Part shown: positions 15,743 to 34,976 of the stretch, in pieces
Layout: each line of letters opens with the position of its first letter
Numbering within the stretch: the first letter of the stretch is position 1
Origin: Paraphysomonas bandaiensis
Taxonomy: Eukaryota; Protista; Chrysophyceae
DNA: 64,000 nucleotides
Direction of reading: 5' to 3'
Assembly (NCBI GenBank): GCA_965644295.1
Contig: CBFFRP010000132.1
Coordinates: 124,001-188,000, forward strand
The notes under the pieces: generated by a model
What the model saw: the letters and a program-made list of their open reading frames with translations, nothing else
Database searches by the model: none
Told to the model about the DNA's origin: nothing
Translations under genes and position numbers: made by a program

Positions 15743-18377
15743 TCATTTCAATAGGTCATCAGTGGTATCGGGGTACGTGTACACTGTAGAGCCTTGCTTG
15801 TACGTGTGTATAAGTTTAGTGGTAATAAACGCTATTCCAGAAAAACATAAAATCGGAACAATAATCACAAGAATTGATAGAGCATAGCGAACATCTAGAA
15901 CAAATCTGAAGCTTTTCCCTACCAAATCAGGAATACTCGCATCGAGACGTAGCCAGAATAAAGGCAACACTTTTTCGCCCATTACTTTAGGGGTAAATAT
16001 ATTGTAAGCACTGCACGGATAATGCAAGCCCGATGATGGACCGTAGCACAATGGGTCAGATGCATTGTACATTGAATAAAACAGTCCACACGTGGAGTCC
16101 AGAGACGGATTGCAATTGTACGTGTAGGTATTAACTTGATTTACGATGACGCCAGAAAGAGCGACCCCTGATGCCGGTTCAATGCTTACATGTCCTGCAT
16201 ACACAGAGTCCCCAAACTCAGTCCATGTACTGGTCGTAACAAGTTCTGGCTCAGCCAACAAATCGGCGTCATCAGAGTACCCTTCACGCGTACGGTAGAG
16301 ATTCACGCCAGTGGTGGATGCACTGGCACGCGCAGAATTGGAAGACTGCGAAAGTGAAGCTTCCTCAGATCCGTAGAAGAGAGGGGTACTCATAATAAGT
16401 GGACGACCACCCGCAGAATACGCAATGTTATTCATATTCTGGTAGGGTAATTCCCCGGCACGTTGTCTTAATTCCTTATCTGCAGTATCGGTGGCGAGGG
16501 TCAAGTCGGGTTTGAATTTATTCACCTCTACCCCGTCGATAAGGTGTGTCTTATCCCACTTGGTGCGCACAACGGTTCGGCTGTATAGGTTCCACATATC
16601 ATCTTCCTTTGACTCAGGTTCACCATCCGTAAGCTGGTAGTCCAGAAATCCCGATGTGACACCTCGTGGTTTGCGAATCACCATGTTGTATCCAGCAACA
16701 GGAGTTACGGAAGTGGTTCCGGCGGAAGGATTCGTCAGTCCAAGTTTGACTACTGAAGGGTCAGCCCACGGCATGTTCGGATAGGTGTACGTATTTGGTG
16801 TAAACCATTCCTTGTACTCCGTCTCACCCTTCCACACTTTTTGTCGAAAGCGATCCTCGCTATCTGCACACGCAGTATATACAACTGTCTCGGGGGAAGG
16901 TGTAATAAATTGTTCAGCTTCTGAATTAGAGTAAACGCGACGCGGTTGTGACAAACCACTGACCCATTGCATGCATCCTAACCCAGCGCCAGAAAGACTG
17001 AAAGCGCTCGACTGGAACGACGTCAGGCAGCAAGGCATATCAGTACTGCCATCTGCGCAAGTCTTGGATGAACCGGAATCTAGGGTAAGGATAGTTCCAA
17101 TTACAATCGCAACGCTGAATGGCTTGCAATCAACACCCTCTAAGTAACGCAGATCGTCTGCACGTTGCTCTGAAAGGCCCATTGCAACAAGGTCATCGCG
17201 CGAAGGAACCGTACCCACACATTCGACATCCCTCAACGCACTGACGCCGGAAGACATGTACGCCTGAGACACCTCCGAGATTGATGGACAGTAGGACACA
17301 TAACAGGCGTCCCGCATGTCTTGCGTAAGGTTACTTGACAGATCAATTATATAGTCAGTTGAGGGAGATGACCCACTGCTTACAGCAGCGCTGACCGCTA
17401 GTAGCCCGAGTAGTGAGGAAGGATGCCCCCAAAGCATCTCAGACACCGCAACATTGCGTACTAAAGAGGAGTACGCGCCAGTAGAAAGAGTGAAATCAGA
17501 GGATTCATTCGAAAGCTTCACGCCGTTGTCATATTTCGACAACCACGAGACCATACCGCCAGCTTTTGAAGTCTTGCTCACAACATTGTTACACACATTT
17601 TCGGGGTCACTTGCATTAACAGCATAGCAGCATCTGCAAGTAGCAGATGGGGATCCACGTTCAGACGAGGAGCATAAAGGTACTGACGCAGAACTGGAAA
17701 TTAGACCGATTTGTGTGGTCGTGCATGTCATGCCAAGAAGCAGAAGTCCTTCGTGTTGAGCACTTGCGAATGATGAGGAATATCCATAATTTTGAATATT
17801 AACTCTATCACTCAGCCGACATCCATCACATGAATTGGACAGCTTTTCGGAAAATTCATAGTACATGTTATAAGAAACAGTCCCTGCCGACTCCGAGAAA
17901 TCAACACCCTTCTTGATTGTATCCAATTTTACACCATAGGGGCCCATTTCGTGAATCTCCGCAGTATCACCGTTCAAAAATCCAATAGGATTAGATATAT
18001 TAAAGCTCCAGACGGTTACCATTTGAGGTGGAGTTTTCTTGAATTTATCTGTGGAAGGATGGCTATCTGAGCACACCTGACAATTATTCATGCGGTAGCC
18101 ATAAGTTAGTACAAAGCGCATGATGGTAGAATTTATGCAGCAGTACCTCTGTAACGGTTTCAATAGTTTCTTTGAGCTCTTCTGTGTACACAAAATATGT
18201 AACAATGAAAGCCAAAGCGACCACTGAGAGGAGACTGATTGCGGCTATTTGTCTGGCGATAGACCGCACGGGGGGTTTGTTGGCGAGTGTCTTCTCTATC
18301 TCCACACCACTCTGCTTCTCCTTCTCCTTCTCCCCCTCCTCCTTCTCCCCCCAAGCATAGTGCTTCGTCTCACACAT
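15743..18377 (-). CDS. CD36/scavenger-receptor class B-like protein, copy A (exons 18377-18147, 18076-15743)
   Basis: N- and C-terminal TM helices. CD36 motifs FNISNP..EMGPY, SIEPASG and LPLFW. Enlarged Cys-rich ectodomain. Confidence 0.8.
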
Positions 18378-21300
18378 GATATGTAGATATAGGCCTCTGT
18401 GATCAACTGATTATTATCCTCCACAGCTCACACTAATATCTGATGTGACCATAGATTGGGTTGGTTGTTGTTCTGATTGCAAGTCAATAACGCCCTTATT
18501 TTGGGGAATCCCAAGCACTGAATATATCTTGGAGACGATGATATCCTATGGACACATTGAGGGGGGAAGGTCGTGTGTGGTTCGTGTTGTGGGTGCAGTG
18601 TGTTGGTGTAATGCGGTATGGAGGCACTGTGTTCGTATGTGGGTCACTATAACGCACATTCATGCGTGTATACGGCCGGTATGGACACGCGGTAGGCATC
18701 CCTACACATCCATTGCACTCCAGCCTCCCCGTTTTTTGTCCCCCTAAATTCCCCCGTATATCCATATACAGTACCATGCTATATCTTGTCCCACATATTT
18801 TTTATCTTCCCCAGTGTACTCCCGTATACCGTCCGCTCCATCTATCCGTGAGGATACTGTCCGTTACCCAGCACTGACAGCCACCATCAGCCTCGCACGT
18901 TTTTTGAAACACGCAGGCCGGTGTGTGTATCTTATAGACACCCACACATCGTACAGCAGCAGCTGGTGTGCTTTGCATAGCACGGAATTCATTAAGCGTG
19001 ACATCGCAAGAAGTTGCTGGATTAAATTGTTCATAACGCTTACATTGGGAGAGGTCGAACACAATGGGTGAGAGTGAGAAGCAAGCACTGGAGACTGAGA
19101 AGGAGAAGGAGTACAACCAAACGAAAGTACATGTCAAAAGCCCTATTGTGAAGTACATCGGCATGGTTGTGCTCCTTTTCCTCATTGCTTTGGCGTTTAT
19201 TATTGCATATTTTGTCTATGACGATAACTTGAAGCACAGAATGGAGACTGTAACGGAGGTACGTAACGGAAAGAGAACTTCACAAGAAATTGTAACATGA
19301 CGATATTCTCCAGGTGTGCACGGATAGCCACCCCTCTGCCAGTACATTTAAAGATTCCATATCCCAAAACTTGAGAGTGAGGCCATTTAATATATCTAAT
19401 CCAATTGGATTTTTGAATGGTGATACTGCGGAGATTCACGAAATGGGCCCCTATGGTGTAAAATTAGATGCAATCAAGAAGGGTGTTGATTTCTCGGAGT
19501 CAGCAGGGACTGTTTCTTATAACATGTACTATGAATTTTCCGAAAAGCTGTCCAATTCATGTGATGGATGTCGGCTGAGTGATAGAGTTAATATTCAAAA
19601 TTATGGATATTCCTCATCATTCGCAAGTGCTCAACACGAAGGACTTCTGCTTCTTGGCATGACATGCACGACCACACAAATCGGTCTAATTTCCAGTTCT
19701 GCGTCAGTACCTTTATGCTCCTCGTCTGAACGTGGATCCCCATCTGCTACTTGCAGATGCTGCTATGCTGTTAATGCAAGTGACCCCGAAAATGTGTGTA
19801 ACAATGTTGTGAGCAAGACTTCAAAAGCTGGCGGTATGGTCTCGTGGTTGTCGAAATATGACAACGGCGTGAAGCTTTCGAATGAATCCTCTGATTTCAC
19901 TCTTTCTACTGGCGCGTACTCCTCTTTAGTACGCAATGTTGCGGTGTCTGAGATGCTTTGGGGGCATCCTTCCTCACTATCTGGGCTACTAGCGGTCAGC
20001 GCTGCTGTAAGCAGTGGGTCATCTCCCTCAACTGACTATATAATTGATCTGTCAAGTAACCTTACGCAAGACATGCGGGACGCCTGTTATGTGTCCTACT
20101 GTCCATCAATCTCAGAGGTGTCTCAGGCGTATATGTCTTCCGGCGTCAGTGCGTTGAGGGATGTGGAATGTGTGGGTACGGTTCCTTCGCGCGATGACCT
20201 TGTTGCAATGGGCCTTTCAGAGCAACGTGCAGACGATCTGCGTTACTTAGAGGGTGTTGATTGCAAGCCATTCAGCGTTGCGATTGTAATTGGAACTATC
20301 CTTACCCTAGATTCCGGTTCATCCAAGACTTGCGCAGATGGCAGTACTGATATGCCTTGCTGCTTGACGTCGTTCCAGTCGAGCGCTTTCAGTCTTTCTG
20401 GCGCTGGGTTAGGATGCTTGCAATATGTGAATGGTTTGTTACAACCGCGTCGCGTTTACTCTAATTCAGAAGCTGAACAGTTTATTACCCCCTCTCCTGA
20501 AGTTCAGGTCAGTATTGCAATTGTTTTGATTTATTTCCTTAACGGTCCTTGTTGTGCAGGCATATACTGCATGTGCAGATAGCGAGGATCGATTCCAACA
20601 GAAAGTGTGGAGGGGTGAGACAGAGTACAAGGAATGGTTTACACCAAATACGTACACCTATCCGAACATGCCGTGGGCTGACCCTTCAGTAGTCAAACTT
20701 GGACTGGCGAATCCTACCGCCGGAACCACTACAATCAGTGAGGTCGGAGGCTATATTCTTGGAATTCGCAAACCACGAGGTGTCACATCGGGATTTCTGG
20801 ACTACCAGCTTACGGATGGTGAACCTGAGTCAAAGGAAGATTACGTATGGATCACATATCGGCGCGGATCCGTTGCTACCCAGTGGGATAAGACACACCT
20901 TATCGACGGGGTAGAGGTGAATAAATTCAAACCCGACTTGACCCTCGCCACCGATACTGCAGATAAGGAATTAAGACAACGTGCCGGGGAATTACCCTAC
21001 CAGAATATGAAAAACGTCGCGTATTCTGCGGGTGGTCGTCCACTTATTATGAGCTTCCCTCTCTTCTACGGATCTGAGGAAGCTTCACTTTCGCAGTCTT
21101 CCAATTCTGCGCGTGCCAGTGCATCCACCACTGGCGTGAATCTCTACCGTACGCGTGAAGGGTACTCTGATGACGCCGATTTGTTGGCTGAGCCAGAACT
21201 TGTTACGACCAGTACATGGACTGAGTTTGGGGACTCTGTGTATGCAGGACATGTAAGCATTGAACCGGCATCAGGGGTCGCTCTTTCTGGCGACATCGTA

Positions 21301-21490
21301 AATCAAATTAATACCTACACGTACAATTGCAATCCGTCTCTGGACTCCACGTGTGGACTGTTTTATTCAATGTACAATGCATCTGACCCATTGTGCTACG
21401 GTCCATCATCGGGCTTGCATTATCCGTGCAGTGCTTACAATATATTTACCCCTAAAGTAATGGGAGAGAAAGTACATCCTCTGTACTGGC
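15960..21490. repeat. Large inverted duplication (arms about 15960-18005 and 19385-21490)
   Basis: The arms are reverse complements with long identical stretches. Confidence 0.95.
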
Positions 21491-21699
21491 TTCATGTTGA
21501 TACCAACATTCCTGATTTTGTCGGAAGAAGATTTAAATCTCTTCTGGATACAAGGTATGCCCTGTCTATTCTTGTGATTGTTGTTCCGATTTTATGTTTT
21601 TCTGGAATTTCTGTGATTGTATGGATGGTAATGTCGAGTACGAAACGGTATGCGCCGACCGCCTCAGATGATTGCCTTCCTTCGAATTCACACAAGTGA
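19064..21699 (+). CDS. CD36/scavenger-receptor class B-like protein, copy B (exons 19064-19258, 19314-20507, 20560-21699)
   Basis: Near-identical to copy A over about 2 kb, with the same motifs and one extra intron. Confidence 0.8.
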
Positions 21700-22919: not shown

Positions 22920-23015
22920 ATAGAATGTTTCTTTAACATTTCTACTTAAATACTGTAAATACTCCTAAATTTCCCAAAATATCGTAAAATTCCCACGTTT
23001 GCATAATGTTTACTT
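22920..23015. mobile_element. Orphan terminus of the AAG...CTT DNA transposon family (direct-pair type end)
   Basis: TCCCACGTTTGCATAATGTTTACTT is 24/25 identical to the end at 34952-34976. A second TCCC motif lies 19 bp inward. Confidence 0.6.
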
Positions 23016-24085
23016 TCAGTGAAACGTAGATAATAGAGAGTAAAAACACACTGAGAGTAAAAACCAGTGTAGCAGTCACTAGTCAATAATAAACGAACTG
23101 CAGAGATGCCATATTGTGAGACCATCCTTCTAGTCCAGCATCATGTATTGAATAAAAGTAAAAAAAATGGTAAAAACTCCGTGTAACTCAAACTAGCCAT
23201 CTAGGTCGCTTGTGGCTTGGTAATTGTGATTTAGGTGTCTCTGAGGTTGTTGATCGCTTTCTGTTGTTGCTGGATGGGATGTCGAACCCAGTTCCCTCCA
23301 TCAATGTAGTTCGCAATATGTGAGGAAGTTAGTTTCTCCTAGTGGTTTCGTAAGGAGGTCGGCTAACATTGACTTTGTGGATATATGATCCACAGTCAAA
23401 ATGTTCTCCGCAATATGTTCTCGGGTGAAGTGATATCGAATCGCGATGTTTGTACGTCGATGATGAGTAGGATTGTAACATAATTGGACTGCACCTTTAT
23501 TATCGCACCAAATAGTTGTTGAGAATGGAAGTTTGAAACCAATTTCTGATAATAAAGAGCGTAGCCATAATGCTTCCTGAGCTGCTGACGATAAAGCCAT
23601 ATACTCAGCTTCAGTAGATGACAATGCCACAGTTGTCTGTAATCGAGATTGCCATGATATAAGACAATTACCTATGAAGAATGTAAAAGCTGTAGTGGAC
23701 CGTCGAGTGAGGTGACATCGTGCCCAATCGCTATCGCAGTATCTTGACAATAAGTCGGTGTGATCATGAAACCTGGTAAAGTGATTTCACCAGGTTTCAT
23801 ATATGGAAAAGTTTCATATAAGTGCTTATTTGAAGTCTGTATTAATATTAGTTATAACTTAGTTGTTGTATATTATCAATTATATATATTATTTTAAAAA
23901 TATTTTACTAAAATACTGTATTATATTGTTACTTCTCATATAAATCTACTGTATTACTACTTATGAAAATCTCACATCAACGTAACACTACTATATATAT
24001 ATTATGCACAGACAACACATACACGAAGTAATAAAATGCAGACACAATATCCCTGAATTAATTACGCTTCACCGAAAACGATATT

Positions 24086-25857
24086 TTATTTGAAGTAATT
24101 CTGCAACACTAAGTTCTCGTACAAAATATTCTTCTTTTCCGCATCATGTAATCGATGCAGTCGATCAGTTTGATCTTGCACTGTAGACATAAGCATAAAA
24201 GAATTTCGACCATCACTACAATGAACAGCTTGTTGAGGTGCAAGAGACACACCAGTATCATCACAAGCACCAAGAGAAGCAGTACGTGCCACAGGGATAG
24301 TAGGAGGTACAGGCGGTTCGGAAACACCAACAATAGATGCAGGCTGAGCAGAGGGATCGTGCTGTACAGGTGAGGGAGCCACTTCTCTGCTTGATACGAT
24401 CTGCTTCATCTCGTCTCTCAACTCCATACACATAGCCTGGGACTCTTTCAGTTGTTGCATCAACTCTTTGACGACAGCATCCTGGTGAAGGGGAGGGGGT
24501 GGATGAGGAATACCCCCATCCTGGTGGGTGGGAGGGGATGCATGAGAAATACTTCTATCCTCAATCGTGATTACTTCGTCATCATGGTACTTCCCCTGCA
24601 CAATAAAAGTCAAAAGTTAAATAAAATATCCAAAGCATAAAAGCAGACATTTCTTACGACTTTACTCCGCTTCGGTTTCTTAGAAGAGATCTTCTCGACC
24701 AGTTCCTGCGCCTTCTTCATGGCGCAGGCCTTCTTGCGCCGCCCACACACTTTTGGCACCACTATACTGTTGTCCGAATGAACTTTCTTGGTTCTCCGGC
24801 CAGCCCCCTTTCGCTTTCCTTCAGAGGGTTCCTGGTCCCAGCCATCCGTCTCAACAACAACAAATGACCCCGTTTCATCCTTGTTTGGTCCTCTCTCCGG
24901 GACATAGGTAAAGTCATGGATTTCAAACCAATTACCTAAGGAAGATATCAGTCTATCATGGTCCTCAAACTCCAGAGGAAGATATCTGTATTCCTTCTTA
25001 AACTTCGAGATCCCCTGTACGCGGAACCACTGTTCCATTGTGCCATCTGCTAACGGTAGAAGCATGGCATCATACCTTGGGGCAACGCACTTGGTCCGGA
25101 GTAAGCAGCCGACGTAAAATCTCTGGCCTCTACGGTCTTCGACGATTGCACGACTTATTGACAGGTTATCCAACCTCCTGTTATAATGAGCAGACAGCAA
25201 TATATAGTGATATAATAGCCCACACTTATCATGGACCTCGAGGTCAATGAATAATTTCAGCGGGGTGTTATTAGGATCACTCATAAATGGTTTGTGAACA
25301 AAACATTGCTCACACCCTGCTAACGTAACAGAGAGTGACTCTGACGAAGATTTGAAGAGTGCAACGAATGTAGATAGGTAATCTACGGCGGCCACGTCAC
25401 CGTTTCCGTCTGCTGTAGCAGCATTAGCAACCACATCAGTTGCTTCAGCAACTACATCAGTAGTATCAGTAACTACATCAGTTGCATCGGCAACTACATC
25501 AGTTGCAACATCAGCCACATCAGTTGCATCGGGAACTACATCAGCTGCAACATCAGCCACATCAGTTGCATCGGGAACTACATCATTTGCATCGGCAACT
25601 ACATCAGCTGCAACATCAGCCCCATGAGTGGCATCAGCAACAGAATCAGTTGCATCAGCAATCACATCATAGGGGACAACCTGAGAATCTTCATCAAAAA
25701 GTCCACGCACTTCTTCCTTGTCTACTGTGTGACACGGTTCACACAATAACTTTAGAGCCGAACATCCCTTCTCTGCGATTATAAATTGTGACCCACATCG
25801 TGAGCACTGATCAAAATCATCAGTGTCACTAGTAGAAGAATCTGAGTCACAGCTCAT
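24086..25857 (-). CDS. Transposon partner gene (exons 25857-24658, 24595-24086; about 569 aa): CxxC-CxxC N-terminus, acidic repeat, basic NLS-like stretch, coiled coils
   Basis: Two ORFs are joined in frame by a GT-AG intron (24657-24596). The gene lies inside the TIRs, divergent from the transposase. Confidence 0.7.
25425..25665 (-). repeat. Coding minisatellite (21/30-nt units) encoding DATDV(A/V)ADVV repeats
   Basis: Repeated GCAACTACATCAGTTGCATC-like units. Confidence 0.9.
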
Positions 25858-26339
25858 AGTTTACTATATTAATATTATATGGTCAATGCCAAATATATAT
25901 TAATATAGTAATATGGTCAACGTTGTGTGTATATGTATATATATAATGGTGTGTTAAGTTATGCATATATATTATGGTCATGATGTGCGTGTTGTAAGCA
26001 CTGCTCGTGCAGTGTGGTTGCGGTGTTGTGTGATGCACACCGCGTCCTCACCACACACTCATGACGCGTGTTCGATTCTCTTGTGGGGTGCTTTTGGTCA
26101 AATTCAAATTTTTTTTGTACGTGTTTTTCTATATGTTATGCTGCGCTTGATCTGTGGGGTGATCTGAGAGCATATTTGAAAATGCACTTCACTCACAATC
26201 ATTCATATCATCATTATTATCACACACACTACCACACTAACACAACACAGTAGCTCACAACACTAATAATAAGTTCTTCGAAGGTAATCACATTCAGTTC
26301 TTGTAAATCTCTGTATGCGCTGTACTGCCTCTCAACACC

Positions 26340-26750
26340 ATAGTGTATGTTACGCTTTGCCCTGGCTCATAATCTGCTCCGTATGGTTCAGCATGTGCAT
26401 GTGATGGCATCTGGTTCATACTTGTATATGTATGACTGTATATAGCGAATTAGAAATGCATCTAGCAGAGTGTGAGTCATTCTTTTGCCCCTGCACAAAC
26501 TCTGCAACCGGCAGCTGAACGGGGTTTCACTGCAGGATGTAGCTTGTGCTGAGCGATGGCAATGAATGTTCACTTGTATAATAGTGTATGTTACGCTTTG
26601 CCCTGGCACATATTCTGCTCCATATGGCCATATGGTTCAGCATGTGCATGTGATGGCATCGGTTTCATACCGTGTATGTATGGCAGTATAGCTAGAAAAG
26701 CATGTATTTTTGCACGTGGTGTGATTCACTTTTTTGCCCCTGCACGAATA
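26340..26750 (+). repeat. Imperfect tandem duplication (period about 240 bp) between the two transposon genes
   Basis: TAGTGTATGTTACGCTTTGCCCTGGC...GGTTCAGCATGTGCATGTGATGGCATC...TTTTGCCCCTGCAC occurs at about 26341 and 26582. Confidence 0.85.
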
Positions 26751-26784
26751 ATTCCTTACTTCTTGTATATATTATTATGTAGTT

Positions 26785-29700
26785 ATGAAAGAACCGTTAG
26801 CCCTCTTAAATACATACAGCTCTTCTTGCTGCTGTATCATGTGCATGATGACATGTGCATGTGACGGTTGCTACTTGTATCGCAACCGCGATCCAAGTGC
26901 AGCTTTGATAGCCAACCGGCTGCGCATAGTCTGTCTGGGAGAAATCCGTCGCCTCAATCGGGACGAGAAGAGGCTATACCTGCTTAACAAATTCCGCACC
27001 TTCCAGGTAAATTTAAATGTTGATTCAATATACATATTTCAATATTCAATAGTAATATCTCGTTTGTATTTAATAAGCAAACTTTTTTCAAACTTGGGAA
27101 AAATTTCTAAATTTGGGACTTTTTAAAAAATTCATCATGAAAACCTCATGTTTATTGATGATATAATTTAGACAGAGGTAATGTTATAGAAGTAAGTGTT
27201 ACTAAGTGTATGATATAGATATACTATATAGATATATGATATATGTATTATTATTATATAATATGAATACTCTTCTCTACTAATAACTATAATTTTCAAT
27301 TCTCTTCCTGTTACGTTTACCAATGAGTACAGGCGCAGCTCCAACCGCTCCTGTGTCTACCCAATCCGTATTTGGAACAACTTCGATATCCCACCTACCT
27401 GATGTATTCGTTTTCTTCTTTCCGGAGGGTTTTATTGCAGGTTTCAACTCTTTCTGCCTTATACCTCTGATAATTTCACCATCTATGAATTCTATATCAT
27501 ACCTACCATCTTTATATCCAATAACACTACCATTGAAATTATATATATTTCTAATTTTCTCACCAACGGCATATAGTTGCAAGTCATCACTACTACAACT
27601 ACTATCACTGGAATCAGATTCATATCTTTCTGAAGCCTGAGTTTTATCGACAACGACGCTATCCCTTGAGCTGCTGTAATTATCAACACAATCTTCTTCA
27701 TCACTGATATCTGAAAGCTGAATAGTCTTGTGTCGCTTCCTTAAATTTTTAATCCTCCTTCCCTTATTTTTTCGCCGACTTATCATACTACTCGCGGTTT
27801 CAAATTGGTTATCCACCTCTGCGGACGACATAGAATCCGTTTCTGGTCTACAACGTCTAGTGTTACTAGCTATGGTTTAGGCTCAGTGTCAATACCAATG
27901 GAAGAAGATGTCAAAAGACGATGAAGGTAAGAAGAACTGCGTGCCTTTCAAAGAGAAGCAGCCTATTGTTGAAGATTTGGTGTCCGATGATGTAGTAGAG
28001 GAGGAGTGGAAAGTGGGAAGAAGGGAGAATGTTCGCAATGTTCGCAGTGAGATACTGGATCAGCAGGAGAAGACGATTTTATCGTTGACGGAAATGGTGA
28101 GGCATCAACAGGAACAAATTGATGCCCTCATTGCCAAAGAACGAGTTCGCCCTGCCGATACTTCTAAGCCGAACTGCTCGCGAAAGAGGAGCGTTCATGA
28201 TGATGAAGATTCAATAACTTCCGAAGCCGACGAGGAGGACTACAGAAGTAAGAAGAATAAATCAAGACGACGAAAGAGGAGAACGAAGGGATTGAAGAAA
28301 TTTGTTGATGAAGGTACTCTTGTTATGCTTGCTCAACAAAATTCAGTAATTGATGATAACTGCAAAATGAAAAAAGAAATTAACCGTTTGCGTTTCTTGC
28401 AATCATAAGTATAATGAGTATTGTCTATTGTATTTTGCATGCAACAATAACAATAAAGTAATAAACTTGTTAAGAACCTAAAAACAGCTTGATAATATTA
28501 CCTTACTTTTATCAACATCCAAGCTGTTGTATATCCTTTTTTCATCTTAAAATATGTATAGTCAACTAGAAATCATTAATGAAAATATTTGGGAAAAATT
28601 TTTTCCCAAGTTTGAAAATAGTTTGCTTAATAGGTGCGGGTCACGACGTACAAGAAGTATAAGTTTAGCATTGTGGTGGGGGAGGGGGATAATATGCACC
28701 TAGTGTGCCGTATGGGGTTCTGTTGTGCGTATGCGGTGTCCCATTGGTACGTGGACAACTTAATTTGTCGACTAAAACGAAGGGACATGAACTCTCTGAC
28801 CGAGTTATCTACTAGCCCCCGGGCTATCCTATGTGAAGTATCGGACAAAAAGCTCATTGGGTTTGCGTCCAGATTTGGTATAAACTTAAATGTGGAACAG
28901 TTGGGTGCCCTCCGAATGTCAGATTCCGAACAGTCCGCTGTGTGTGCTGCGTGGATGACCTACTATTTTTCACTGGTGGGTGATCAAGTCCCCGACTCTG
29001 ACTCGGAGATTCACCTCGAGCCCATTCCTAAGAAGAATGTGTACTCGGAGTACCGCTTTGACATGGAACAGATTAGTGAGATACCACTTCAGCTTCAGAC
29101 ATTCCTGCAGATATGGAAGAAGATTTTCTCGTACGTCAAGGTTCGGAAATATAAGCAGAGTTGTGGGCATTGCAATACTTGTGCCATGCTTTCGGATAAG
29201 CGTCGCCAGTTCAGAGATCGAAGGGGGCGGGAGGAGATTACGAATCTTTACGCCCTACACCGTCTAAGTACTATGCAGGAACGCCGTCGGTACTACTCCA
29301 GACGACTTGAAGCACAGCTCCCCCCACAGTTAGTACTGTCCACCATTTCAGATGGTATGCAGCAAAATCATTGTATGCTTCCCTGGTTTGGACATAATAA
29401 GATGCCTGCCATCCACATCAAACAACACTTACAGGGTGTGTTGATGCATGGCAAAAATATGACAATATACAGGACTTTTGCCAATGTTGGTGGTGGTGCC
29501 AACCTTGCCATACATACATGGCTATTAAGTCTGGATGAGCTACACCAGAAGGGAGAGTTGCCAAAGGTCCTCTATCATCAGATTGATGGTGGTTCAGAGA
29601 ATGCTAACAAGGAAATGTATGCCATTTGTGAGCTGCTAGTAGCTTCCGGGCTTGTCGACAAGGTTGTCTTAACAAGACTTCCTGTCGGGCATACGCATGA

Positions 29701-31242
29701 AGACATTGATGCAAACTTTGCCCTTATATGGAGAATGCTGCGTGATGAATACATCTGTACTCCCTCGGAATTTTCTACTCTGATTTATAGAGCATTGAAG
29801 AAGAAAGTTGAAGTTTCAGTGATAGACTTATTTGTCCTACCTGATTATTGCAAGATTTTGGAAGGGTGCATTGATGTAGATATCGGCCGCTTCGCAAAGG
29901 AGGAGTGGACCCAACTGCAGTTCACGTTTGAGAGGGTGGTCACTCCTGCCGAGTTGACTGAACATCCTCTTGGCGTGAAGACATCATATCGGGCATATGC
30001 CTCAGAGGAATACATCGAAATTGTCGAGGACACTGACCAGCAGTCTCTCTGTGGCCTCGTTGCTCAACTTTGTGAAGTGGAGAGTTATCCTCTCCCTAGT
30101 GAAAAGCCCTTGAACTTCTTGAAGAATCTTCCAAGCGGTGACTTTTCCCCAGCCCCCTTCATAGCTGGATCTTTTGAGTTAACTTCAGCTCTGTGCAAGA
30201 AAATGATAGAACAATATTCAACGCATAAGCCGAAGGTGGCCGAGGAATGGAAAGAGTGGCTGGATATTTCTCCCAAGAGTAATAGTGCTCAAGATTTTGT
30301 CACCGAAATTGGTGGAATATTTATTCCACTAAGAGATGTCTTATTCAGTGGGACTGGAGTGTCCGATTTTGAAGTGGAATGCAAACATAGAGGAGTACGC
30401 GGAGGGCTATATGGATCCCATGCAGACGGAATTAGCAGGGTCAAGGCTACGGCTTGTGTTCTACACAACGAGAACAAAACTTCCGGCGCAAGGAAGATAC
30501 CCCCACGAGTTGTCGTCCGGAATTGTGATGGTTCTACACCCACCGATATGGTCGGAGTCTTGCCCAATGTATACCCCGGCAGAGAAGAGCAGCGTGCGGC
30601 GAGGAAGAAGACAAATGTTGAAAGAAAAGAAGCACGTGCAAAGAAGGCGAGGCTTGATGCCAGGAGGAGGGAGGAAGGCTGGGATTGTGGTGATATAATC
30701 GTCAATGACTCAGACGATAGTAATCAATCTGGTATGTTATTGTGTTGTAGATATTATATTATTATGCCATGTTTATATCTGTACAATATCAGGACAAGAG
30801 GTGGAGTCATCATCGTCTGATGACGATGGTAACCCCTCTATCACGTATTCTCCTGGGGACGAAATTGTTACTGTGACTAGGATGCGTGGTATTGTCCATG
30901 CTGTCAATGATGATGGTACCTATCATCTTGTTTACAAAAGCAAGAAGAGATGTGGTGCCACCAGGGAGGATAAGTCAGTGCGCTCCAAATACTTCTCGCT
31001 TGCATCTGGTATACTTTATATATATGCTTGTTTGTGTACTGTACCTAATATTGAATATAGCCCACCAGGATAATAAGCCTCATAATATTCCCTCCAGTAA
31101 AAGAGACAATATTCCGAGGTGGAGATATATCCAGGAACCCACTAAGGAGTGGGTAGACACAGGTGCAGTTGATTCTGCTTCTATTATTACTGGTAAAAAC
31201 GTACCAGAAGTTCAGTTGATTATCGCTTGTAAGTATAGATAG
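26785..31242 (+). CDS. Sola-like (DUF7869-type) DDD transposase, about 905 aa (exons 26785-27006, 28634-30731, 30793-31008, 31061-31242)
   Basis: VCxxxFCxxYxVS, CGHCNTC, ISDGMQQ (D1), QIDGGSEN (D2) and LPVGHTHEDIDANF (D3). Tudor-like C-terminus. All junctions are GT-AG and in frame; the start codon is uncertain. Confidence 0.8.
27280..27831 (-). CDS. Stand-alone homolog of the transposase C-terminal tail (acidic, Tudor-like and WVDTGAV..GKR motif)
   Basis: RWDIEVVPNTDWVDTGAVGAAPVLIGKR aligns with the host RWRYIQEPTKEWVDTGAVDSASIITGK. Open 183-aa ORF. Confidence 0.6.
   Translation of the reverse strand: MSSAEVDNQFETASSMISRRKNKGRRIKNLRKRHKTIQLSDISDEEDCVDNYSSSRDSVVVDKTQASERYESDSSDSSCSSDDLQLYAVGEKIRNIYNFNGSVIGYKDGRYDIEFIDGEIIRGIRQKELKPAIKPSGKKKTNTSGRWDIEVVPNTDWVDTGAVGAAPVLIGKRNRKRIENYSY
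27908..28408 (+). CDS. Coiled-coil/basic partner ORF of the nested element
   Basis: Open 166-aa ORF with a coiled coil, a basic stretch and a C-terminal helix. Same layout as the end of the 24086-25857 gene. Confidence 0.55.
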   Translation: MSKDDEGKKNCVPFKEKQPIVEDLVSDDVVEEEWKVGRRENVRNVRSEILDQQEKTILSLTEMVRHQQEQIDALIAKERVRPADTSKPNCSRKRSVHDDEDSITSEADEEDYRSKKNKSRRRKRRTKGLKKFVDEGTLVMLAQQNSVIDDNCKMKKEINRLRFLQS

Positions 31243-32079
31243 CACTTTGTAATATATATAATAGTGCTATCTATAGTATGCATGTATTAACCGTTACATT
31301 AACCGTTACATTCTCACTTTTTGGACCTGTAACTAATATAAAACTTATTAAATGTCTCCAAAAACATGTTCTCTTTACACCTACTACATTACTTATTGCA
31401 AAACATATAAAAAACACAACTTAAATCGACATTTTCAAAATTTCACCAGGTTTAGAGCGCTTCTCCAGGTTTGTTCATCACATCAACTTAATGTTATGTG
31501 GGATCCAGAATATATCAATCCTTGCTTAGCAGTGCCTTTGAGATACCTAAGAACATGTAACGCAGCATTACAGACAGATATTTATATTAGGCATGTCAGA
31601 AAATCTGACAAGAGTATTGCCTGCGTAGGCGATATCCGGTCGAGTGCATACTGCTAGATACATCAGGGAACCTATGAGCTCCTTGTAGGGGAAATTCTGA
31701 ACATAACTTTGATTCAACTCTGAAAGATGATTGTATTCATGTAAATCATAGTTGAAGGAAAGTAACATAGGTATTGACATCGGTTTAGAGTTGGACATAT
31801 TGAATTTGTCCAGTAGTTTGTTGACATCTGCTCCTGACTGAGAGTCGTATTATTCTATCAAATTCTTGATGGATGGAAATGCTCAAGTAATAATCTAAGA
31901 GTCCGAGATTTTTGTAATTTCGAACTTTTTGGATAAATGGTCTTTGAATTGTTGGATATCAGTGTCGGATGCAGATGCTATATAATAATATCATCCACAT
32001 ACATGGCTATTAGCATAATCCTGCTATTAATCTGCTTTTTGAATATACACGGGTCAGATATTAGTCTGGTGAAACCCAT

Positions 32080-33859: not shown

Positions 33860-34976
33860 TGTGTGGTGAGCACGCACACAGACAGACAGACACACACACA
33901 CACACATACATACATCAGAATGCTGCAGAGCTGATACCACTCTCAGATTACACTCTTACTGAGTGGCTCAGAGTTGCAGGCTTATAACTGCCTTCCAGGT
34001 AGGTCACATGTGTTTTCATGACAGTGTTTGGTCACGAGGCTGTAGCACAGAGCCTCATACAGTGGATTGAGGAGAGTGGACATGCACCTTCGGTCACTCT
34101 CCTTGGGGTTGCCAACAATACACCTACTGCTGGTATGTAGCACTATACACACGATCTCATATGCTTCAATTCATTTATGTATATGTCTACTTTACAATAT
34201 CAGAATGTTTGATTGCGTAGATTACATGATGCAGAAGAAAGGACTGCCACAACGGAAGCTTACTGCGTCAAAGGCATTTCATTTAAGCTTTTAACCTGCC
34301 GTAAGTAGCTAGAATAGCATGTCCTGTCTAATCCTAAATCTACTTGAAGAAAGAGTTGTCGGAAGAAAGAGATAGAGAGCTCTGAGAAGTTGCCTGCATG
34401 CATTGATGGGCATTCCAGCAGTCGTCAAGAGGAGGCATCACTCAGTGCTAGAACACAGCTTCGTCGAAAGATGAGACCTCCCCGTCGAAACCGAAGCAAA
34501 GATAGAAAGAAGAGCACGAAGAAGAGCAGGAAGAACTCCTACACAGAAAGTCTTCTTGTGGACACGTTCGTATGGCTTATATGAACGTGACAACTTCAAA
34601 GCTGAAGCCCAGCTCCTCGAGCTTCAGAACCGGAAGGAGAAGAACAAGGAATTCTGTAGAATGTTATTGAAATATAGAGATGAGTAGAGTGTGCATTGTA
34701 TGTTTATTGCTCTTCTTTTCAATAATTATGTGGTGTTATGTTTATACAATGACTAGCTAGAACTAGTTTGTAGCTCATTCACGTACATAGCAATCAAACG
34801 GTAAGTTGAGCCCATTTTTATACTGAAAATAATATTAATTTCCAATATTAGTCAATAATATATCAATATAAATGCAGAGAACTATTTATTAGCACTCTAG
34901 TAACTAGCTAGTTTTAACAAGGAATGTACGTCAAAAACGTGGGAATTTTTTTCCCACGTTTGCATATTGTTTACTT
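33860..34976 (+). mobile_element. Truncated member of the AAG...CTT family (hairpin-type end plus decayed coiled-coil ORF)
   Basis: Ends AAACGTGGGAATTTTTTTCCCACGTTTGCATATTGTTTACTT followed by ATT. Upstream K/R-rich coiled-coil relic at 34390-34685. The left boundary is not defined. Confidence 0.65.

Follow-up and report, generated by a model that had tools for sequence, protein, structure and literature searches.

Organization of the locus

A stretch of 64,000 nucleotides from the genome assembly of Paraphysomonas bandaiensis (contig CBFFRP010000132.1), referred to here as the window, was analyzed computationally to follow up an original prediction, made from the sequence alone, of a two-gene DNA transposon family. 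The window is eukaryotic and transposon-rich, with approximately 42% G+C and several Copia-type retrotransposons. Within one Copia pol gene lies an element carrying a transposase gene and a second gene, termed the partner, and within the first transposase intron of this outer element lies a smaller relative, the nested element (Table 1). What lies here is a genuine cut-and-paste DNA transposon of a single-celled stramenopile: the outer element is autonomous and has been active in recent times. It probably belongs to a widespread protist clade characterized by the domain DUF7869, with Sola1 as its nearest described kin, and was probably hit after its own insertion by a relative from a sister subfamily. 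At most, the clade is an undescribed variant or clade and not a new kind of element.

Table 1. Features of the outer element, the nested element and further transposon ends, with positions in the window.
Feature	Position	Strand	Details
Fourth end, AAGTAAAC subfamily	22987-23015	-	direct-pair type, followed by TCA; body to its left
Outer autonomous element	23752-31489	+	7738 bp, or approximately 6181 bp once the nested insert is subtracted; located in a Copia pol gene
AAT duplication of outer element	23749-23751 and 31490-31492		left and right copies; from terminal repeats and empty sites
Left terminus of outer element	23752-23800	+	begins with AAG; inverted pair of the motif AACCTGGT at positions 19 and 38
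Partner (putative helper) gene	24086-25857	-	open reading frames 24610-25857 (415 aa) and 24086-24613 (175 aa); divergent from the transposase gene
Partner N-terminus			acidic, then a CxxC...CxxCH motif (zinc-ribbon-like)
Partner acidic repeats	25375-25689	-	repeat unit of 7 aa
Partner central domain	24853-25410	-	predicted to be BAH-like
Partner C-terminal parts			in order: basic stretch (nuclear-localization-like), coiled coil, conserved motif ending in FK
Tandem repeats	26340-26750		unit of approximately 249 bp, between the two divergent genes
Transposase exon 1	26785-27007	+	Cys-rich N-terminus, MKEPLALL...FRTFQ; GT at 27008; located by tblastn using P0016 and P0006, homologues that lack introns
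Transposase intron 1	27008-28631	+	1624 nt now, approximately 70 nt originally; GT and AG intact
AAT duplication of nested element	27072-27074 and 28629-28631		
Nested element	27075-28628	-	1554 bp, AAGCAAAC subfamily, in opposite orientation to its host element; non-autonomous by its coding content
Termini of nested element	27075-27125 and 28580-28628		included in the comparison of end geometry
Nested open reading frame, 183 aa	27280-27831	-	C-terminal module of the transposase only: Tudor-like domain and W.DTGAV...GKRNRKR tail
Nested open reading frame, 166 aa	27908-28408	+	acidic stretch, coiled coil, basic stretch, C-terminal helix
Transposase exon 2	28632-30731	+	DDD catalytic core, DUF7869
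Candidate catalytic Asp codons	29351-29353, 29585-29587, and 29702-29704 or 29708-29710	+	
Transposase intron 2	30732-30792	+	
Transposase exons 3-4 (approximate)	30793-31242	+	Tudor-like domain and WVDTGAV...GK tail; from tblastn with P0016 and splice context
Right terminus of outer element	31437-31489	-	ends with CTT; AAACCTGG twice in direct orientation, at positions 18 and 37 counted from the tip (spacing 19 bp)
Third end, AAGTAAAC subfamily	34948-34976	-	AAGTAAACAATATGCAAACGTGGGAAAAA, inverted-pair type, followed by ATT; decayed, truncated copy

The terminal inverted repeats (TIRs) of the outer element read AAGTCGGTGTGATCATGAAACCTGG... at the left and ...CCAGGTTTGTTCATCACATCAACTT at the right, with AAT on either side. 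Its empty site is preserved in 11 paralogous Copia copies, where ...CTGAC AAT GTTATG... is uninterrupted; because these paralogues hold a single AAT, the limits of the element and its 3-bp duplication are exact. L074, a nearly identical sister of the outer element, is located on a different contig and lacks the nested element, whose TIR is AAGCAAACT(T/A)TTTTCAAACTTGGGAAAAA. The corresponding site in L074, ...gtattt AAT aggtgc..., likewise has one AAT, so that the limits and the 3-bp duplication of the nested element are exact as well. Both elements thus begin with AAG, end with CTT and duplicate AAT, as originally predicted. Three end types (AAGTCGGTG, AAGCAAAC and AAGTAAAC) were found in the window, in agreement with the predicted minimum of three subfamilies.

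Genome-wide, at least 40 left and at least 40 right matches to the ends of the outer element were found, several of them 100% identical, and at least six copies of the nested element are 100% identical across the 200 nt compared. Identical copies, intact open reading frames (ORFs) and a nested insertion that spared the splice sites all indicate a young family with ongoing activity in this genome.

Transposase gene and protein

The exons of the transposase were each analyzed separately rather than as a joined spliced protein. The present length of intron 1 is due to the nested element. The ORF of exon 2 matched Pfam DUF7869 (PF25273) with 102.3 bits (E = 3.4e-29, residues 259-416), against a gathering score of 26 bits, and had no other Pfam match. 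In a search for its homologues in metagenomes, 289 were scored, and DUF7869 was present in all matches listed, none of which was named. The three motifs on which the original prediction had relied (SDGMQQN, IDGGSEN and GHTHEDID) are present, and in an alignment of 65 homologues, in which they appear as SDGM, IDGGSEN and GHTHEDID, residues D131, D248 and D250 never vary and D209 hardly does.

In an AlphaFold model of the core (predicted local distance difference test, pLDDT, 89.5), the acidic residues occupy the canonical DDE/D positions, namely strand 1, the end of strand 4 and the beginning of the helix that follows strand 5. All 17 solved chains that matched this fold with Z of at least 8 are retroviral integrases or DDE transposases (Z 9.7-8.0), headed by the integrases of simian immunodeficiency virus (9.7) and prototype foamy virus (9.6), Mos1 (9.2) and Metnase (8.9), followed by TnsB and IstA. 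Foldseek gave weak agreement with the same integrase/DDE transposase fold. According to the model, the transposase is a compact DDE/D enzyme of the RNase H-like type, with a D-39/41-D spacing and, as in mariner, without an insertion domain.

Matches to DUF7869 that exceed the cut-off number at least 23 in this genome. Several of them belong to divergent subfamilies and lie within long open frames (1149, 907, 890 and 874 aa), suggesting that a number of DUF7869 lineages in the genome could be active.

Related elements in other organisms

Complete elements of the same kind were recovered on four metagenome contigs from other organisms, each encoding one of the homologues. L083 carries an element of 5249 bp with termini AAGTCGAGTCGAC... 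and the duplication CTG, and L204 one of approximately 6.26 kb with AAGTCGAACCGACC... and the duplication ATA. A further element, of 5844 bp with AAGCAAACAATACGCAAACGTGGGAAAA and the duplication TTT, was present in two samples, as L205 and L206; its TIR is close to that of the nested element and to the third and fourth ends in the window. Since complete elements on other contigs show them, AAG...CTT termini and a 3-bp duplication are traits of the lineage. L207 has TIRs of the AAG type, with flanks (TTA and TTT) that differ by one base, and a TIR search in L079-L082 and L208 gave no clear ends.

Partner gene

The two ORFs of the partner gene are probably joined across a short intron; a paralogue exists as a single ORF that reads through the junction. 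The partner is homologous to the second genes of the elements in L083 (E = 7e-23; C-terminus 6e-5), L079 (4e-35) and L204 (2e-30), and its C-terminal motif ending in FK is conserved across organisms. On this sequence homology, the partner gene has been conserved across elements from no fewer than three other organisms. The L205 partner is a more remote relative that shares an RTKC..PRYD core. The elements of other organisms have the partner downstream of, and convergent with, the transposase gene, whereas it is divergent in the window; gene order is therefore not fixed, and the predicted divergent arrangement holds for the outer element but not for the family.

The partner appears to be confined to these elements. 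A word-indexed homologue search returned only two proteins, and an exhaustive HMMER search was needed to find 93 relatives of the central domain among 1.84 billion representative proteins. With only 93 representatives, the partner is a rare, element-specific family.

The original prediction described the partner as a coiled coil. A coiled coil is present, but so are a zinc-ribbon-like N-terminus, a conserved C-terminal helix and a central domain that was modeled with confidence (pLDDT 91.7). In a fold search with VIA-align, BAH domains filled most of the top rows at Z 5-6.1, led by ORC1 (6.1), ASH1L (5.9) and DNMT1 (5.9) and including MET1, EBS, TNRC18, AIPP3, ZMET2, Rsc2 and Sir3; the tool advises caution below Z 8. 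Foldseek found no match to the domain in the PDB, and no BAH match was found in the partner with Pfam. The structure prediction called for at the outset thus gave a good model with weak fold matches, and a BAH-like domain, i.e. a chromatin-reader fold, is best taken as a lead. A complex prediction of the transposase core with the C-terminal 136 residues of the partner scored 0.00, which is evidence neither way. No Myb domain was found with Pfam in the partner of the window; the L205 partner has a sub-threshold Myb-like match (PF22980, E = 0.028).

The L205 gene (6105-8093, minus strand), as a partner of the AAGCAAAC subfamily, has kept the core in the form RCNRPRYD. The tandem repeats between the two genes of the outer element are a variable minisatellite in the presumed promoter region, of which L074 has more units.

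Asymmetric ends

The geometry of the termini was compared in five elements, namely the two in the window and those in L083, L204 and L205. In all five, an 8-9-bp motif occurs twice in direct orientation at one end, at positions of approximately 18-22 and 37-41 and exactly 19 bp apart, while the same motif forms an inverted pair at the opposite end (5/5). The motif itself varies by subfamily (AAACCTGG, TTGGGAA and AAACCAGGC). A geometry that stays constant despite differing motifs speaks for protein-binding sites by which one end is told from the other, and the subterminal motifs are accordingly regarded as putative sites of this kind.

Target-site duplication and target preference

AAT or ATT had been proposed as the duplication of the family. 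A genome-wide survey upheld the length but not the sequence: perfect 3-bp duplications flank 11 of 14 adjacent left/right end pairs in this genome, and they read TTA, AAT, ATA, AAA, TTG, TTT, TTA, AAG, ATT, GTA and CTT, to which other organisms add CTG, ATA and TTT. Of 60 unique ends, 56 (93%, compared with a background of 60%) have A or T in the middle of the triplet, and the most common flanking triplets, TTA and TAA, together account for 14. What is conserved in the duplication is its length of 3 bp and a central A or T only, i.e. NWN (N, any base; W, A or T) and not AAT/ATT. Furthermore, the two bases outside the triplet favor A and C (C in 48% at position -4, A in 50% at -5; 60 ends), and the target is weakly palindromic, AC|NWN|GT.

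The L074 copy also contains a 1.7-kb insert (approximately 108-1845), an unrelated TIR element with ends TAGACTAAACCATAGTCTG...CAGACTATGGTTTAATCTA, apparently with a duplicated ATT on its flanks. If so, this is another family that makes 3-bp duplications.

Classification

The Sola superfamily, with its Sola1 group and the reference Sola1-1_AP, was reportedly described by Bao, Jurka and Kapitonov in 2009. Catalytic cores of Sola1-1_AP, Sola2-1_HM, Sola3-1_HM, Zator-1_HM and two ISAzo13 proteins are printed in the supplement of PMC3985635, and against these the motifs of the present family were compared by eye. Its GGGANLAIHTWLL, IDGGSENANK and VGHT, set beside GKRGSNEIGTCLL, SDNCGGQNRN and ERGHT of Sola1-1_AP, fit Sola1 better than Sola2, Sola3, Zator or ISAzo13, and about one third of the residues match the Sola1 reference from helix 1 to the second aspartate. 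DUF7869 clusters in the ESM Atlas are most common in Arthropoda, the phylum of the Sola1 reference. Shared with Sola1 are an A/T-rich target and an element size of approximately 5-6 kb, together with a three-aspartate (DDD) transposase of 700-1000 aa. Within the protein, the two have in common a long helix and a CxxC motif ahead of the first aspartate, similar motifs around helix 1, a second aspartate in the context D-x-x-G-x-[QE]-N-x-N, and GHT ahead of the third. Peculiar to the present family are the 3-bp NWN duplication, the AAG...CTT termini, the conserved second gene, the asymmetric pairs of subterminal motifs and the Tudor-like tail of the transposase. Sola1 and Sola2 make 4-bp AWWT duplications (PMC3845634, PMC3627910), and insect Sola1 termini read, for example, GGACCGTTTATTTTG (PMC3845634); the present termini are AAGTCG..., AAGCAAAC... 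or AAGTAAAC..., not the GGACCG... termini specific to the Sola1 group.

Several points weigh against a placement beside Sola1 and against the view of the partner as a chromatin-reading helper. The kinship with Sola1 comes from a visual comparison with an alignment in print. The 4-bp duplication that defines Sola is not found at the empty sites, in the 11 matching end pairs or in three other organisms; the exact 3-bp duplications bear out the predicted departure from the Sola rule. For three of the 14 end pairs, the flanks do not form a 3-bp duplication; TTAA fits one of them. Among the 133 members of an arthropod DUF7869 cluster in the Atlas, 11% also match PF07592, which would allow a link to Zator/TP36. 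Finally, the match of the partner to BAH domains is weak, at Z of about 6 and under the caution line of 8, and its role as a helper is something that we infer.

A more far-reaching reading, which is considered rather unlikely, would make the family a superfamily-level, undescribed eukaryotic DDD clade, widespread among marine and freshwater protists and marked by AAG termini, NWN duplications, left and right ends told apart by a direct versus an inverted pair of binding motifs, and an obligatory helper, whose BAH-like domain would join with the Tudor-like tail of the transposase to tether the complex to chromatin marks and thereby steer integration.

The family could instead be a deep branch of the Zator superfamily, for which a 3-bp duplication is a known trait and whose transposases derive from bacterial TP36/ISAzo13 (PF07592). 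Besides the 3-bp duplication and the co-matching arthropod cluster, the fold, which is nearest to mariner and integrases, and the compact DDE/D core without an insertion domain are compatible with this, and DGGSEN at the second aspartate resembles DGGPDEN of Zator-1_HM and DGGGSN of ISAzo13 (PMC3985635 supplement, ISAzo13 consensus). Because Zator is defined by its kinship to TP36/ISAzo13, that kinship was tested directly, with ISAzo13 genes taken from bacterial genomes via the motif SKWNKIEHR. Aligned with hhalign, 65 family members and 31 ISAzo13 transposases gave a probability of 0.6%, for whole proteins and for cut-out cores; the core alignment paired the right motifs and was topologically sensible, but was not significant. 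Three family members, scanned at E up to 1 or 10, matched neither PF07592 nor ISAzo13 of NCBIfam, and no match to PF07592 was obtained in this genome or in 14 control genomes. The helix-1 and GHT motifs fit Sola1 better, and the third catalytic residue is D in GHTHEDID here, whereas it is E in SKWNKIEHR in Zator/ISAzo13. Zator is not known to carry a partner gene. Membership in Zator is therefore judged unlikely. The PF07592 co-matches, taken by themselves, hint at a remote relationship between DUF7869 and TP36.

It is less probable still that the family is an independent, superfamily-level lineage tied to Sola1 and Zator only through the common DDE/D fold. Such a status would agree with the lack of a significant sequence link to any named transposase family other than the anonymous DUF7869, and with hallmarks of its own in the AAG termini, the NWN duplication, the asymmetric ends and the putatively BAH-like partner. 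A literature search found no paper mentioning DUF7869, and one on Sola1 with 3-bp duplications or in stramenopiles found nothing relevant and no paper describing the family. The match of about one third of residues to the Sola1 reference speaks against independence, as does the frequency of DUF7869 in arthropods, where Sola1 was defined. Of the predicted, possibly undescribed lineage, a coherent two-gene lineage for which no describing paper was found has thus stood, while its rank does not exceed that of a variant or clade.

An element of the PIF/Harbinger type (two genes, a 3-bp TWA duplication and a Myb-like partner), to which the two-gene design, the 3-bp duplication with a central A/T, the most common flanks TTA/TAA and the sub-threshold Myb match of the AAGCAAAC-subfamily partner would conform, is rejected by transposase family membership and retains next to no probability: the transposase is a DUF7869 protein without DDE_Tnp_4 or Plant_tran matches at E up to 1, in keeping with the original prediction, duplications such as CTG, GTA, AAG and TTG go beyond TWA, and the partner in the window has a predicted BAH-like fold in place of a Myb/SANT domain. 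The resemblance to PIF/Harbinger is probably one of working, with a helper that has DNA- or chromatin-binding features and recruits an unrelated transposase.

The placement of the family in a protist DUF7869 clade near Sola1 bears on annotation. DNA-transposon classification rests on transposase family, duplication length and termini, and a Sola1-like transposase combined with a 3-bp duplication, new termini and a second gene means that annotators of protist repeats would misfile or miss such elements.

Proposed mechanism

In the proposed sequence of events, the outer element inserted into the Copia pol gene, and a 1.55-kb non-autonomous relative from a sister subfamily later landed in the first transposase intron. 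The DDD transposase would bind the subterminal motifs, excise the element and integrate it with cuts staggered by 3 bp into weakly palindromic targets of the form given above. By analogy with the Myb-like protein of PIF/Harbinger, the partner would act as a helper. Jointly with the Tudor-like tail of the transposase, it may bring the transposase to DNA ends or chromatin, or hold it there. As a compact two-protein system with asymmetric ends, the element is a good case for the guidance of a DDE/D transposase by a helper or chromatin reader.

Nested element, further ends and neighboring genes

The original prediction assigned a transposase gene and a divergent partner to each complete element. 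This holds for the outer element, but the nested element has only the C-terminal module of a transposase, and from its coding content it is non-autonomous. Its 183-aa ORF matches residues 855-959 of P0016 (blastp, E = 3e-15), and neither DUF7869 nor a catalytic domain was found in it by a Pfam scan. The 166-aa ORF bears a weak likeness to the C-terminal third of the partners, although its match to L205_662 (E = 0.11 across 111 aa) is not significant; it may be kin of this coiled-coil part.

The third end was read where it had been predicted, at 34976 and followed by ATT. The fourth end cannot be its mate because both face the same way.

To the left of these elements, two long ORFs (15743-18205, minus strand, and 19314-21699, plus strand) form an inverted duplication and encode nearly identical Ser/Cys-rich proteins. 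Both proteins have a C-terminal hydrophobic stretch, and the second copy is split into two ORFs.

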